A stretch of 63,636 nucleotides of DNA, counting the filler, from Hyphochytrium catenoides (Eukaryota; Protista; Hyphochytriomycota), in the NCBI GenBank assembly GCA_900088475.1. It is 8 parts of 8 records of this genome, joined end to end, with 100 filler letters (N's around TTAATTAATTAA, not from the genome) between each part and the next. Parts side by side here need not be neighbours in the genome. Positions count along the whole stretch, not along the records: positions 1 to 10,649 come from FLMG01003310.1; 7 more parts are not named here. One strand, written 5' to 3'. Made by a program: the position numbers and the translations under genes. The notes beneath the pieces were generated by a model. The model was not told the DNA's origin, did no database searches, and saw nothing but the letters and a program-made list of their open reading frames with translations. Shown here one piece after another: positions 307-10,549 of the stretch. Within the stretch, counting starts at the first letter, position 1. The number at the start of each line of letters is the position of its first letter.

Positions 307-3300
307 ATGGTGAAAACAGTCAGGGAACCGAGAACAGGAAAGGAGTTCCCAACATTAGTAGAGCATGGAGACCTTTTGTGCGGTACAGGAGCTCGTGTCA
401 AGCGAATTGGCTTCGTTGACGGTGAGATATGATTTGCCCTCTTGTATGGCGTAGCTCGCATCTATCTATACTTTTTAACTCGGCCTATCTCCCCTATACC
501 TCGAGTCGGGACTTCCGTTAGTTGCGGCTATCCTTTCATTCTATGCCACTTGCTTCCCCAAAAGTTAAGGAACCTAACGTAGCCTCGCTTACATATGTTC
601 ACCTTCCAGTCAACGTTTACGGGATGGCCCTGTATGTGGACCCGGTGGGAGCATGGGCACACCTGAAGGAGTTTGAGGGACTTCCGGGGAGCGAGCTGGC
701 GTCTCGGGTGGACTTCTATTCGAAGCTCATTGCAGCGCCGTTCAGGAAAACTATTGTCCTGACAATTGCCAGATATCTTTCAGACTCACAGGTGTCTGGT
801 GGTTTCTCAGAGAGCTTTATACCTCGGCTGGGCGAGCACAAATACATCTTTGATTCGCTGAGCCGCTTGTTGCTGGGCCAGCTGTTCACGAATGACACTC
901 AGGTTATGTTTATCATGGATAATGGTACTTTTACGCTAAAAATCAACGACAAGACTCTGGGAACTATTGAGTCATCCGAACTTGTGACTGCAGCCCTCAG
1001 TAAGTCCATTGCATAAGCAGAGTAGCACAAAGATATGCGAGCTGCTAACAAAGGGGTGGTACCTCCGCAGGCGTTTATCTGGATGACAACCCTATCTCTC
1101 CCGAAGGAAAGAAATCTTTAGTGGCAAGAATGCCCAAAATCCTTGCCCTGGGAGCTGCGGCTGAGGCCGAGAATGCTAGGGGGGTGAGTCACAACCTGGA
1201 AGCGGCAAGTTCTGCTGTCCCTCAGCTAAACGGGCCCAGTGCTGGCAAAAGTGAGAAGGGGGCGGCCTCCAATGGAGCCCTACCTCGGAGCCTTACCGAG
1301 TACGGAGAACCCGATATATTTCCTGCCTTCAAAGAGCGCATTCGTAGGGCGGAGAAAGACTTCTTTGACGAGGTGTCTGAGACCGGGAACTGGGTTTTTC
1401 AGGCTGAAAAAAGGGGAATTCAGAGCTACGCACATATCAAGGGCGATGGCACAATGATGGGAAAAGGTGTAATCCCGTACAGCCCTAGGCATGTCCTGAA
1501 CGTCATTCTGGATGTGGAAAAGAAAGGTGAGCTGGCCTACTTCTAGATATTGCTTTTTTCCTCTTCCAATTGTTTGCCCGTGGAGTCCCTCTCCATCCCG
1601 TGTTGCCAAGTGTTTATTGCGACAACCTGATCGCTTGTAGCTGCGCTTATTAGAAGTTCGCGCTACCATCCTTGGCATGTTCCTATGCTGCTTACATTTG
1701 CACTCGTAACCAACAGGAGAGTGGGACTATGATTTGGACCATGGCAAACGTGTCAAGGTCTTTAACAAGCAATGTAACCTGGACTACCTTTGTTATAAGG
1801 CAGTCTGGCCCACGGCTGCCAGAGATTTTGTGTCCATTGTCCAATGGTTTACGAGGCCGCATGATGGCTCTGTCCTAGTCATCGCACTACACCACGAGGA
1901 CGGGGCGGTGCCAGAAAAGAATGGGAACGTAAGAGGGCGTTGCCTACTTGGTGTCTGGCACATTATCCCTAGGGAGGAGAACACCCAGTCCCACGTTACC
2001 TTTCTTGTAAGAGCTGACCTAGGCGGAAGCATTCCCAAGTCAATTGCTGCTAAAGCACAAGGCAACCAGCCATTTTTGATCTACAACATTTGGAAAGTCC
2101 TAGACAAGACCCTCCAGGGCAAGAATACTACCACTGAACCTGTGGTTAATTCTCCGGAGTCCTCGGCATCTGCGGCACATGCCACTCCACAGCTGCCAAG
2201 TATGTCGAATCCCAAGGAGCTAACCATCTCAAAAGGCCCTGTGAAAGCAGCCTCAGATTCTTACGGGACCCCTATCTATCCCCCTCAATTTGAGACCAAG
2301 CTCCGACAGGTTGAAAAGCAGTTCTATGAGGAGGTTAGCCGAGAGGCAGATTGGACGCTAATTGGAGAAAAGGACGGTGTCAAGGGCTGGTCTCGCGCAG
2401 ACGGGGCCACATTAGGGAAAGGTGTTATCCCCCATAGCCCCAATGCAATTTTTTCTATATTAGCTGATCCCAGCAAGAAATGCCTGTACGATACGGATCT
2501 AGACTTGGCAAAGACACTGAAAAGAGTCAGCCCACAGTGCAACATTGACTACTACCTCTACAAAGCTGTATGGCCTACAGCCGCGAGGGATTTTTGCTGT
2601 GTGGCATTCTGGAAGGTCCTTGATAACGGCACCATTCTCTTCCTCTTCGGAGAGCATGAGGATCCAGATTGTCCCCCGGTTAAGTCGAATGTGAGAGGTA
2701 AAGTAACTATCGCTGTGTGGGAGCTGGTACCTCAGAACGATTATAAGGCGACACATGTTACATTTATGGTAATCAGCGAGCTTGGGGGTTCCATACCGAA
2801 GGCTATCCAGAACAAAGTAGCACAGAATCAGCCCTTCCTGATGAACGGTATCTGGGGAATCTTAGACAAAGAACCGTCATATGAGGCCCAGGCACGAGGC
2901 AAGTTGGTAGTGAATCCTAACGCAGCGAGTCCCGAACCAGCTGCGACTCCTAGCGGCAGGCAGACGCGGGCGGATTCAACTCGTAGTGTAGATTCCAGTG
3001 TTTCTCAGATGCAAAAGGTTGATCTAAGCGGGATGGACCTTTCTCCTTTGACTGAACCCAACACTAGCAAAGTGTTCCCTGGTTCTCTGCCGAATGGTGA
3101 CATCCTCCTTGGCACTGCATGCAGAACCAAGACTATTGGATTCATCAGCGGTAAGGATTGTGCGGCCAGGCTGGGACTCGCAAGATAACTCCCCTATCAT
3201 TTCACCTATGCATGGAATTGATTTGTCTGCGTCCCAGATGTATTCCTTTTATGGTGCATTTCCCTTCGTTCTTCTGCTTGCTCACCTGGTTTATCACTTC

Positions 3301-4825
3301 TTGCGCAGTTCGCGTGTACGCACTGGGTCTCTACGTCAATCCTGCTCAGTGTTGCTCTGAGTTATCGCGCTATCAAGGCCAATCCCTTGGCGCGTTGCAG
3401 CGTGACGAGAAGCTCTATCAGGACCTGATCAACGGCTACTTCCGTAAAACTATCGTCATTATTCTGGCGAGAGATTTGACGGAAGACCAATTCTCGGGGG
3501 GTATTTCCGAAGCTCTCATGCCCAGACTTGAGCAGAAAGAGGAGTGCTCCAAGTTCGTAGCCCTGTTTAAGGGTCAAAGCCTTAAGAATGACTCCGTACT
3601 AGAGTTCTCGATCAGTACAGATGGTGAGCAGATGTTTCTCTGACCTTCTTGCCGTCGAATCCTTATCAATCAGTCAGCGCGCAGCGTTTTGATTCGCCTA
3701 CATTCTAGTGGTTTGCTCCGTACCTTGTTCTATGCTTTTCCGTCTGTTCTTTGTTTGTCGAGGAAGGCCGATGGTAGAGGCGTCGTGTACGTTTGTTATT
3801 TGTTGTCGAGGAAGGCCGATGTCAAGGCGTTGAAACCCAATTCCATGATGCGTAATGTAGGGTTACTGGAGTACACCTTGAACAAGGGAGATTTGCAGAA
3901 CCTGTGGAGCGAAGATTTGGGCCATGCTTTTATGAAGTGCTTTTTCGACCAGGCCTCCGCTGTTGGGCCTGAAGGCAAGAAGTCTCTCATCTACAAACTA
4001 CCACAGCTGCTTGATCAAGCACCAGCTGATGAGGGCCACACTTTAGCGGACGAGCTGGAGAGCATGCGAGACAGTCTGGAAGACCAAGAGCCTGGAACCA
4101 AGAGGAAGAGAGGGATTCTTTGGAAGTTCAATCCATACGCACAAGGCATTCTTATCCCGACCTGGACCAGGAGATATTGCGACTTGGACAGGACGATGTT
4201 TGGCATGAAGAAAAGAAAGACCGATCGCGTGTTCAAGAGGAAAGTGAACCTACGATACTATACAATTGAGGGTGAAGGCATAAAGACCGGGAAACAGCTC
4301 ATGACTGGCAAAAGAGGAACGTTCTTCACGTTTACGCTTAAGCCGCAAGAGAAGTACAGGGCGAAAGATCTGCCTACATTTCGACTGAGTTGTGAAAGTG
4401 AGGACGAAGGCAAGGAGTGGTTTGACCTGATCCGTGAAGCCATCAACGCAGATGAGCTGAAAGCACAATGGCTTGCCCGGCGCCAAGCCGCGATCCTTAA
4501 AGCTCAAACAGTAGTCAATGAAAGGAGTGGGGACTCCACTGTTGGCGGGAGTGAGGTTGGAGAACCCAAAGCTTTCAACCCATATGGACCTCGTACCAAC
4601 GATGGCAGCCTGGACTTCACCTCTCTGCTTAATCTAGTAGAGAATTTGGAGATGAAGGACAAGCTGATTCTACTCTTCGCTGTTCTCATCGGAATCCTGA
4701 TTCTGCCTTATTTATCGACGATCGTGTGGGCACTGCTTTCTTGGGTCCCATTCATCATTGTGTGTGGGGCGGTGGTTGCTGGCCTCTCCCACTATCAGCA
4801 GACTGTCACAAGTAAAACGCACTAG
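307..4825 (+). CDS. Multidomain putative lipid-binding/transfer protein: CHI-like fold, START, START, CHI-like fold, PH, C-terminal TM hairpin (1224 aa, 6 exons)
   Basis: Exons 307-421, 610-999, 1071-1526, 1717-3150, 3309-3623, 3861-4825, all GT-AG and phase-consistent, 3675 nt in total. CHI-fold motifs: VREPRTGKEFP...GTGARVKRIGFVDVNVYGMALYVD...VYLDDNPISPEGKKSL, and a second copy LTEPNTSKVFP...GTACRTKTIGFISVRVYALGLYVN...GPEGKKSL. Both START domains contain YKAVWPTAARDF and (D/E)LGGSIPK. PH: RGILWK...WTRRY...FRLSCESEDEGKEWFDLIREAI. The C-terminus is hydrophobic. Confidence 0.88.
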
Positions 4826-5090
4826 TTCTAGTGGATAGGATGGGGAATAAATAGTCTAAAGGAGTTCGAGAGGGGACTTTTGGGCGGGACAGGGACAGTA
4901 GGAGCGACAGATTGCTGGGGATGATAGTTGATTGGGAGAGGAAGGGAAAGAGAGAGAAAGACTAAGGAAGAGTGATGAGGACATGTGCAAGTAGTGGCGA
5001 GGCAGAGTAGGTTAGAGGACTTTGGGTAGGTATATTGGTAATGGCTTTTTATAAAAAGGTACTATGTGCCCAGAGTTAGAGTGACATCCC

Positions 5091-6636
5091 TTAGACAGAC
5101 CTCAAAGTGTCTAGCACTGCATATAAGCCATCCACACAAGAGGCCCCAAGTCTTTTACACCGTTCAATACTCCATCCACCCTCCTCATCGGGCATCTCAA
5201 TATTGTCCTTAAAGGGCATCTCCTGGGTCATTGAGAGACAACCAAAAGTTTCAGCTGCCCAGGCTGAGAGGATACTGAGGTTGGCTGTTCCTGCAGCTTC
5301 TTTGGGATAACCGTGTATTCGTTGGAAGTCAGGGTTGGCCATCCTGAGAGCTTCTTCATACCTAAGCCACGATTCATAAGCCCCTAACCGCCAGATGCTA
5401 TGTCAGGGTTGTCTTACCTATCCTGGCGCTTGTGTCGCGCCTCGGTAGCACTGGGTACTGCCCTCGGTGTCCAGGATACAAAGACGTAGGGCAGCTCCTC
5501 ATCAGAATGCACATCAAGGCAAAAGTCGACCCCGGTGGCGAACATGTATTGCTGAACTCTATACACCTCAGGGCTCTTCTCCAATGACGGTTGAAGCCAC
5601 TCACGGTTTAGGTTAGATCCTGAAGTTAATAGTGAGACAACAGCTTAGGAGTCCAGTGAAACTTCTGAAGCTTCGCTGCATAAGCGTACCTGAGGAATTC
5701 ACCCTCAGGTATCCTCTTCTAGAGCCGTCTGGATTCATATTCGGTACTATAAAGACATCACCCTTGGACAGAACTTTCCGCACGACGGGGTCAGCCGGAT
5801 CAAGCAAGCGCTGAACGAAGCCTTCCATCCACCAGCTTGCTTGTGTTTCTCCTTTATAAAAGAAAACTAAATAAGATCCAAGGGACAGAAACATAGCCTT
5901 TCCTAACTACTACGCAATACCAGGGTGTTGTCGTCCAACAACCCACAGTGCCAGCTTTTCTCGGAGCTGGGATTTCTCCATGCTTCCTGGTAGCGTCTTG
6001 ATGGGGGACGGAAGTGTTGGGGCCTTGTCTCCAACAAGAAGGGCATCAATAGTGTTGCCGTCGAGGGTCTCTCCCAGAACTGCAAGCTGATGGATGCCAT
6101 CAGTCCATATCAGGAAGAAAGAAAACAGAAGGGAAATTCCACCTTGCATCTGCCAGTGCGAGAAGTTTGGCACTTGGAAAGGAAGTCTAGGTGCCGTTCC
6201 TGAGAGTAGGGCGGGTAGTAGGCGAAGAAAATGGAGCTATACGAGGGAGTCAATGTCCAAGAAAGGGAGGTCCCGTCGTAACTAGTGCTACTCAAGCAGA
6301 ACCATGATTCACGATTATAGCTTGCATAGACCCGATATCCTGGCCAACCATCTGGATAGGACGTCTTGCCTGTAGCACGGAGACGGTAGAAAGTCTAAAA
6401 AAATTGTTTCACCGATAAAAGGCCAAAGGCATCTATGTCTACTCACTGGCGTTGCAGAGCCTAAAGGTGTAGTTATGTCCGGTGGACATCGCTGCTACCC
6501 TGAAGTGGAACCACTGCAGAAAGGGCTTGCCGCAGTCCGGAGCGTCGTAAGGAACATTGAGGAGTGCTTCCCGCTTGTCCTGGTCAATACTTATGACTTC
6601 TATAGCTCCAGAGTCGAAGTTTGCATTGATCTTCAT
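5091..6636 (-). CDS. M14 zinc metallocarboxypeptidase, cytosolic carboxypeptidase (Nna1/CCP, M14D) of the short bacterial type (405 aa, 6 exons)
   Basis: Exons 6636-6447, 6369-6143, 6086-5921, 5851-5690, 5619-5418, 5361-5091 (1218 nt). Motifs NFDSG, QWFHF, FAYYPPYS, RQHPGE (Zn), PNMNPDG, NLNREW, SPEV, LDVHSDEE (Zn His), EMPFKD (catalytic Glu). Confidence 0.92.
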
Positions 6637-10225: not shown

Positions 10226-10549
10226 ATGGAAGAGAACCAGAAGAAGGAGTATTTCTCAGCTGAGAACTTCAAGAACAACATGCTTCTAGTGGATTATGTG
10301 CGCTCCTTCATGGCCATCATCTCAGGGTCCATTGCTGGTGTTTGGGGCTTCACAGGCATCCGAGGATTCGTTTTCCTGTTTATCACACACCTGCTTACGT
10401 CTGCGGGACTATTGGTGAAAATGAGCTTTGGGTCCAAGGATTACGTCCACCAAAGCCCGATCGCCTTCATCATCAACGGACTAGGGTCGCAGTTCCTATC
10501 CTTCGTGCTGTTCTGGACTCTCTTTTATGCCCTTATACACTTGTACTAG
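10226..10549 (+). CDS. EMC6: ER membrane protein complex subunit 6 (TMEM93/Rab5ip family)
   Basis: Single exon, 107 aa. NNMLLVDYVRSFMAIISGSIAGVWGFTG...GF...SFVLFWTLFYALIHLY matches the EMC6 consensus. Confidence 0.93.
   Translation: MEENQKKEYFSAENFKNNMLLVDYVRSFMAIISGSIAGVWGFTGIRGFVFLFITHLLTSAGLLVKMSFGSKDYVHQSPIAFIINGLGSQFLSFVLFWTLFYALIHLY

Follow-up and report, generated by a model that had tools for sequence, protein, structure and literature searches.

Results

A Six-Exon Gene Encodes a Single 1224-Residue Chain

A gene at positions 307 through 4825 (+ strand) of a joined stretch of the Hyphochytrium catenoides assembly GCA_900088475.1 is predicted to encode a multidomain protein in which two domains of the chalcone isomerase (CHI) fold enclose a pair of START domains and are followed by a PH domain and a C-terminal hydrophobic hairpin. 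Positions are those of the whole 63,636-nucleotide (nt) stretch, herein the window, and the gene lies in the part taken from FLMG01003310.1 (1 through 10,649). Five long open reading frames (ORFs) are listed on the + strand here, in alternating frames (522 through 1016, 1121 through 1546, 1734 through 3188, 3158 through 3643, and 3689 through 4825). According to the original prediction they splice, together with an unlisted first exon, into one frame of 1224 residues, and this is what we obtained: in silico joining of six exons yields 3675 nt, equivalent to 1224 codons free of premature stops plus a single terminal stop codon. The first exon, with 38 codons, is too short for the ORF listing threshold. 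Its ATG at 307 is flanked by A (−3) and G (+4), and an in-frame TGA (289 through 291) is located six codons upstream. All five introns are of the GT..AG type and in phase 1, with lengths between 71 and 237 nt (188, 71, 190, 158, and 237 nt), a 5′ GT(A/G)AG, and a 3′ (C/T)AG. The gene structure holds at the DNA level.

Exon 1 (307 through 421) contains the start codon, residues 1 through 38, and the first base of codon 39, and contributes the N-terminal strands of the first CHI-fold domain (CHI1), including the LCGTGAR stretch at 376 through 396. Exon 2 (610 through 999; residues 39 through 169) supplies the CHI1 core; exon 3 (1071 through 1526) completes this domain (to ∼1165) and continues through a 45-residue low-complexity linker into the N-terminal third of START1 (from ∼1301). 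The remainder of START1 (to ∼2120), a linker, the complete START2 (∼2268 through 2885), a further linker, and the first strands of the second CHI-fold domain (CHI2; from ∼3045, with the LLGTACR stretch) are all encoded by exon 4 (1717 through 3150). Exon 5 (3309 through 3623; residues 799 through 904) supplies the CHI2 core, and exon 6 (3861 through 4825) the end of CHI2 (to ∼4024), an acidic linker, the PH domain (∼4103 through 4450), a 65-residue linker, the hydrophobic hairpin (∼4646 through 4792), a 10-residue tail, and the stop codon (4823 through 4825). An AATAAA at 4846 through 4851, 21 nt downstream of the stop codon, may serve as a polyadenylation signal.

The boundaries between domains all fall within exons and the introns all fall within domains; the fusion is therefore independent of the splicing model. 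CHI1 is linked to START1 by exon 3, START1, START2, and CHI2 are linked by exon 4, an uninterrupted frame of 478 codons, and CHI2, the PH domain, and the hairpin are linked by exon 6. The internal repeats also bear on the junctions themselves. The junctions at intron 2 (1000 through 1070, GTAAGT..CAG), intron 3 (1527 through 1716, GTGAGC..CAG, inside START1), and intron 5 (3624 through 3860, GTGAGC..TAG) each face sequence of the sister copy that is unbroken by an intron, and no gap occurs there in the CHI1/CHI2 alignment (introns 2 and 5) or the START1/START2 alignment (intron 3). Intron 1 (422 through 609, GTGAGA..CAG) and intron 4 (3151 through 3308, GTAAGG..CAG) occupy matching sites in the two CHI copies, in residue position as well as in phase, and joining at these junctions keeps a 12-residue Arg-to-Tyr spacing (alignment offsets to Medicago sativa CHI, Protein Data Bank [PDB]: 1eyp). 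The shared position could mean either that this intron was already in place when the CHI module was duplicated or that it marks an ancient position in the family.

Two Sister START Domains Occupy the Center of the Chain

Pfam START (PF01852) matches the chain in two stretches with an E value of 6e-22 and 78.5 bits against a cut-off of 22. START1 and START2 are 44% identical over 206 residues (E = 2e-66), and a maximum-likelihood tree built from 85 START segments makes them sisters with support of 100/99, which points to a tandem duplication inside the lineage of this gene. The closest solved relative by sequence is STARD10 (PDB: 6ser, E = 3.3e-7). A model of START2 based on 84 related segments has a predicted local distance difference test score (pLDDT) of 95.4 and adopts the full helix-grip fold; Foldseek comparison with the PDB again places STARD10 first (E = 1.2e-14, TM-score 0.77), and StAR, STARD4/5, and CERT also match (E values from 1e-14 to 1e-12 across STARD10, StAR, STARD4, and CERT). 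While the STARD10 likeness thus extends from sequence to structure, the protein differs from STARD10 and other START lipid-transfer proteins (PCTP, CERT, STARD3/4) in carrying two sister domains in tandem, and identity to solved START domains is just 14 to 23%. The nearest START structures in the AlphaFold database are 31 to 32% identical.

An FFAT-like string with acidic flanks, D-F-F-D-E-V-S, occurs at residues 265 through 271 (reported at 1099 through 1119). It was rejected as a functional FFAT motif, as the site falls within the first START1 helix, and is unlikely to serve as a free motif for VAP binding.

Both Terminal Domains Are Predicted to Be Noncatalytic Members of the CHI-Fold Superfamily

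CHI1 (residues 1 through 200) and CHI2 (residues 764 through 958) are 38% identical, with an E value of 1e-41 and three single-residue gaps. Because each domain is split across three exons, the Pfam Chalcone matches of the individual exon fragments stay below the gathering score of 27 bits, with 16.9 bits for exon 2 (E = 0.0043) and 22.9 bits for exon 5 (E = 6.5e-5). Searches of solved proteins with phmmer reach significance: the exon 5 piece matches the Arabidopsis fatty-acid-binding protein (FAP) AtFAP3 (PDB: 4dol, E = 4.1e-9) and ancestral CHIs (1e-8 to 1e-6), and the exon 2 piece matches the ancestral protein ancCC (3.2e-6) and CHIL (PDB: 4dok, 2.9e-4). In an Atlas feature search, exon 2 adjoins Chalcone_3 clusters of mainly diatom proteins, the nearest at 0.95. 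The two short N-terminal CHI pieces taken alone gave no PDB match. An NCBIfam scan yielded no hits.

The catalytic CHI active site comprises Thr48, Tyr106, and Asn113 (M. sativa numbering). By alignment offsets to 1eyp and ancCC, both copies have Tyr at position 48, Val or Phe at position 106, and Ser or Ala at position 113. On account of the residues at 106 and 113 the domains are not expected to be catalytic isomerases, and a catalytic chalcone isomerase was excluded, the catalytic residues being absent from both copies. The family motif is retained: the β3 motif LxGxGxR, as defined in PMC9996372, is present as LCGTGAR at residues 24 through 30 and as LLGTACR at residues 784 through 790, the second Gly being replaced by Ala in the latter. 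The Arg of each motif (R30 and R790) takes position 36 of M. sativa CHI, and a Tyr (Y42 and Y802) takes position 48; both residues are thus intact in both copies, as the original prediction had it. In AtFAP1 an Arg-Tyr pair holds the fatty-acid carboxylate, and in plant FAPs the Tyr of this pair occupies position 48 (PMC5984530). Y802 is aligned to the KVY Tyr of AtFAP3, and we infer that it is the Y116 equivalent.

Overall, the two terminal domains most closely resemble the type III CHI-fold proteins AtFAP3 and AtFAP1 (PDB: 4DOL and 4DOO), with which they share the β3 motif, the Arg and Tyr positions, the lack of CHI catalytic residues, and, for AtFAP3, the best match to a CHI piece. Judged by these alignments, both are FAP-like, noncatalytic members of the CHI-fold superfamily. 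They differ from the FAPs, which are single-domain proteins, in being two copies within a 1224-residue chain that also contains START domains, a PH domain, and a predicted anchor, and in the Gly-to-Ala replacement in CHI2; moreover, the protein begins directly at the CHI-fold N terminus, with neither an N-terminal targeting extension nor an N-terminal transmembrane segment.

The yeast proteins Aim18p and Aim46p resemble the H. catenoides protein, as predicted from its sequence, in the noncatalytic CHI fold, the conserved Arg, and a membrane anchor. Theirs, however, is an N-terminal anchor in the mitochondrial inner membrane, and they bind heme and possess a fungal-specific loop between helices α1 and α2 (PMC9996372). 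The H. catenoides protein has its predicted anchor at the C terminus, in the form of a hairpin; its alignment to plant proteins runs without gaps for 72 residues after strand β3b, so that a fungal-type extra loop is not evident, and the two yeast structures (PDB: 8EW8 and 8EW9) are not among the PDB phmmer matches of the exon 2 and exon 5 pieces at E values up to 10. Orthology to Aim18/46 was rejected for want of the fungal loop, an N-terminal transmembrane segment, and a sequence match.

A Basic PH Domain Precedes a Predicted Hairpin Anchor

The PH domain is recognized by Pfam (PF00169) with a marginal score (E = 5.9e-6, 27.2 bits against a cut-off of 25.1), and the Atlas feature search places the region with PH clusters at 0.92; its sequence has no match in the PDB. 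It contains a W-T-R-R-Y strand, typical of PH β2, and is strongly basic, with 27 Lys/Arg among 116 residues and a net charge of +13. The hydrophobic hairpin (residues 1166 through 1214) consists of two segments, seen as two hydropathy peaks, around a P-Y-L-S turn. The linkers that separate the domains are 26 to 65 residues long and mostly of low complexity, the two longest low-complexity linkers being 80% small/polar. At the domain level the chain would therefore combine a predicted anchor, two START domains, and a basic PH domain, as an anchored carrier does.

The Domain Combination Has No Counterpart among the Relatives Searched

When 1.84 billion representatives were searched exhaustively with exon 4, without a profile, no protein exceeded 33% identity. 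The best matches are multi-START protist proteins of 1000 to 2200 residues (28 to 33% identity). The 15 nearest START relatives scanned with Pfam have two to five START domains, accompanied by PH, MENTAL, Pex24p, 2-oxoacid dehydrogenase, or beta-lactamase modules, and none of the 15 has a Chalcone family match. Extending this to the 150 nearest START representatives, with phmmer and a hidden Markov model built from both CHI copies, likewise identified no CHI-like domain. Word-indexed searches with exon 2, exon 6, and the two-copy CHI alignment returned no relatives, and scans of metagenomes and prokaryotic genomes with the CHI alignment returned no loci. No single protein with chalcone isomerase and START was found in the literature searched.

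The original prediction had read the chain as CHI-START-START-CHI-PH with a C-terminal hairpin, and knew of no described CHI and START fusion. Both statements stand: START and PH score above their Pfam cut-offs, the CHI pieces match solved CHI-fold proteins, the hairpin gives its two hydropathy peaks, and the 150 START representatives, the 15 Pfam-scanned relatives, and the literature searched contain no such fusion. The combination of CHI, START, PH, and anchor was found nowhere else, an absence of evidence within limited tools that did not include an InterPro architecture query.

A degenerate DNA scan of metagenomes with a 12-residue motif common to both START domains gave a single match, which lacks a CHI domain. 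It corresponds to a 408-residue protein encoded at 683 through 1909 (− strand) of a high-GC metagenome contig (Ga0308021_10005033), with a transmembrane segment at its N terminus, low-complexity sequence rich in Gly/Ser, and a single START domain; this domain shares the motif Y-K-A-V-W-P-T-A-A-R-D-F with both START copies of the H. catenoides gene.

The uncharacterized protist multi-START proteins are thus the closest START relatives and often carry PH, MENTAL, or Pex24p membrane modules, for which reason the theme of an anchored carrier fits; they differ in having no CHI-like domain, and the START pair studied here was duplicated within its own lineage. Better-characterized carriers of membrane contact sites follow a related plan. 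Ysp2/Lam4 and GRAMD1 consist of GRAM, StARkin, and a C-terminal transmembrane segment, ORP5/8 of PH, ORD, and a C-terminal transmembrane segment, CERT of PH, FFAT, and START, and STARD3 of MENTAL and START. The H. catenoides protein appears to share this design, as read from its sequence, in having a PH-like membrane binder, one or two lipid-carrying domains of the helix-grip or another type, an anchor or tether, and disordered linkers. None of these carriers has a CHI fold, however; in the present protein the anchor, a two-helix hairpin, has the PH domain beside it instead of at the opposite end of the chain, and homology is limited to START and PH.

Listed Haplotype Variation Is Denser in the Predicted Introns

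Two haplotypes are present in the DNA runs that contain the locus. Among the variants listed, all five insertions/deletions (indels) fall in predicted introns: a 1-nt indel at 1053 (intron 2), one at 1570 (intron 3), and three, at 3662, 3802, and 3840, in intron 5. Introns make up 19% of the gene length. The density of single-nucleotide polymorphisms (SNPs) is 15.4/kb in introns versus 6.3/kb in exons (40 substitutions listed, with 22 further variants outside this set); five haplotype SNPs are in intron 1 and three in intron 4. The exonic changes listed comprise 11 synonymous and 12 nonsynonymous ones, and five of the latter group in the low-complexity linker at residues 202 through 215. As partial evidence, this pattern fits a constrained coding gene.

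Discussion

A Proposed Role as a Tethered Lipid Carrier or Sensor

We propose, with a probability of roughly 0.55, that the protein works as a tethered sensor or carrier for hydrophobic ligands. Two short hydrophobic helices at its C terminus would hold it in a membrane, and, given this helix-pair anchor and the lack of an N-terminal targeting extension, all other domains would face the cytosol. There, the START domains would take up membrane lipid, their closest solved relative being the phospholipid carrier STARD10, and the CHI-fold domains may use the conserved Arg and Tyr to hold a carboxylate amphiphile, for example a free fatty acid. For its part, the cationic PH domain would attach to the anionic surface of a membrane, be it the anchoring one or one apposed to it. 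Such a layout would follow the logic of the lipid-transfer proteins that are anchored at membrane contact sites, and by analogy with these the protein may be a contact-site tether that couples the handling of fatty acids or heme to the transfer of glycerolipids or sterols. The most specific form of the proposal, in which the CHI fold is a cytosolic lipid-carrying module of an anchored, multicavity protein and the movement of free fatty acids (CHI) is coupled to that of membrane lipids (START) between organelles, is tentative, and we regard it as doubtful.

Several observations weigh against the proposal. The distance between the PH domain and the anchor is only ∼65 residues, so binding to the same membrane fits as well as bridging. 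The START2 model resembles sterol, ceramide, and phospholipid START structures about equally (TM-scores of 0.75 to 0.79), and its ligand class is therefore not assignable. The per-domain structural check set out with the original prediction succeeded for START2, with its confident model and significant STARD10 match, and fell short for the CHI1 core: the exon 2 model, which covers 129 of ∼200 residues and derives from a two-row alignment, is poor (pLDDT of 53), and although its top Foldseek matches are CHI-fold proteins (AtFAP1, CHIL, and the CHI family), they are nonsignificant (E of 0.009 to 0.05, TM-scores of ∼0.3) and count neither for nor against a CHI fold. Nor is fatty-acid binding deducible from the Arg-Tyr pair, since Aim18p and Aim46p share four of five AtFAP1 site residues yet bind heme, not fatty acids (PMC9996372). 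START-, CHI-, and motif-seeded searches found no orthologue with the CHI and START architecture, so conservation is unusable as support. Finally, a search for RNA runs listed none; the runs that contain it (three of the same organism and one wastewater metagenome) are DNA, with contigs that cross the introns and show no splice joints.

The main alternative is that a protein with this architecture works at one membrane or on lipid droplets, where the proline-containing hairpin would sit monotopically in the endoplasmic reticulum (ER) or a droplet monolayer and the four cavities would buffer or sense fatty acids and lipids, or pass them to local enzymes, instead of carrying them from one organelle to another. 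Monotopic hairpin anchors have short hydrophobic segments around a proline-bearing turn, and the hydrophobic segments here are short, with a four-residue turn that contains a proline; the PH domain is near the anchor, and some START relatives carry Pex24p-type ER-shaping hairpin modules. Plant FAPs, in addition, function in fatty-acid metabolism and not in transport (PMC5984530). An arrangement of four domains strung on long, flexible linkers, plus a PH domain that binds membrane separately, is nonetheless typical of bridging carriers; we consider a role confined to one membrane unlikely. The heme bound by Aim18p and Aim46p, which keep the Arg along with most of the AtFAP1 site, and the diversity of CHI-fold ligands (PMC5984530) suggest another possibility, namely that the CHI-fold domains bind heme or some other ligand and that the protein is not a fatty-acid handler. 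This we judge to be improbable: AtFAP3, ancestral CHI, and CHIL are all matched by the exon pieces, whereas Aim18p/Aim46p are not matched at E values up to 10, the gap-free plant alignment leaves the fungal-type loop without evidence, and a chain that also includes START domains suggests lipid chemistry.

It is also conceivable that the gene model is an artefact, with two or more neighboring genes wrongly joined, or that the locus is a dead, untranscribed relic, as the lack of listed RNA runs and of an orthologue would allow. Against this, the domain boundaries are within single open exons and the introns divide domains that require both halves, the 1224 codons are free of premature stops, and, among the variants listed, the haplotype indels are all outside exons and exons are less variable than introns; an artefact or relic is accordingly very improbable.

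If the coupled-transfer version of the tethered-carrier proposal is true, a new fold joins the eukaryotic lipid-transfer domains. The CHI fold has so far been known from enzymes, plastid fatty-acid binders, partners of chalcone synthase, and fungal hemoproteins; to our knowledge, it is not among the limited set of folds that perform nonvesicular lipid transport, and we know of essentially no cellular role for non-plant FAP-like proteins. A natural fusion of CHI, START, PH, and anchor is a guilt-by-association clue that would place FAP-like CHI domains in cytosolic lipid trafficking or sensing, and it provides one concrete protein in which the binding of fatty acids or heme can be tested beside lipid transfer. 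Should the domains be inert or the gene not expressed, the locus would merely be another lineage-specific domain shuffle.

Neighboring Genes and Other Occurrences of the Locus

A 235-nt contig of the wastewater metagenome is 97% identical to 1875 through 2109 (exon 4), and the organism or a close relative is thus present in wastewater. In two DNA runs, contigs match only 850 through 895 (45 nt, exon 2), with unrelated flanks on both sides, which suggests a short stretch common to another genomic place.

Upstream, an 85-codon ORF without a Pfam match lies at 23 through 280 (− strand); an internal ATG is ∼66 nt from the ATG at 307, and this ORF and the gene would be arranged head-to-head with a very short intergenic spacer. 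Downstream, a multiexon M14 carboxypeptidase gene at 5091 through 6636 (− strand) is tail-to-tail with the gene at 307 through 4825; Pfam identifies the N-terminal domain of a cytosolic carboxypeptidase at 6439 through 6636 (E = 2.1e-11) and gives a weak Peptidase_M14 match at 5613 through 5894. A single-exon gene for EMC6 (ER membrane protein complex subunit 6; Pfam E = 1.6e-18) follows at 10226 through 10549 (+ strand).

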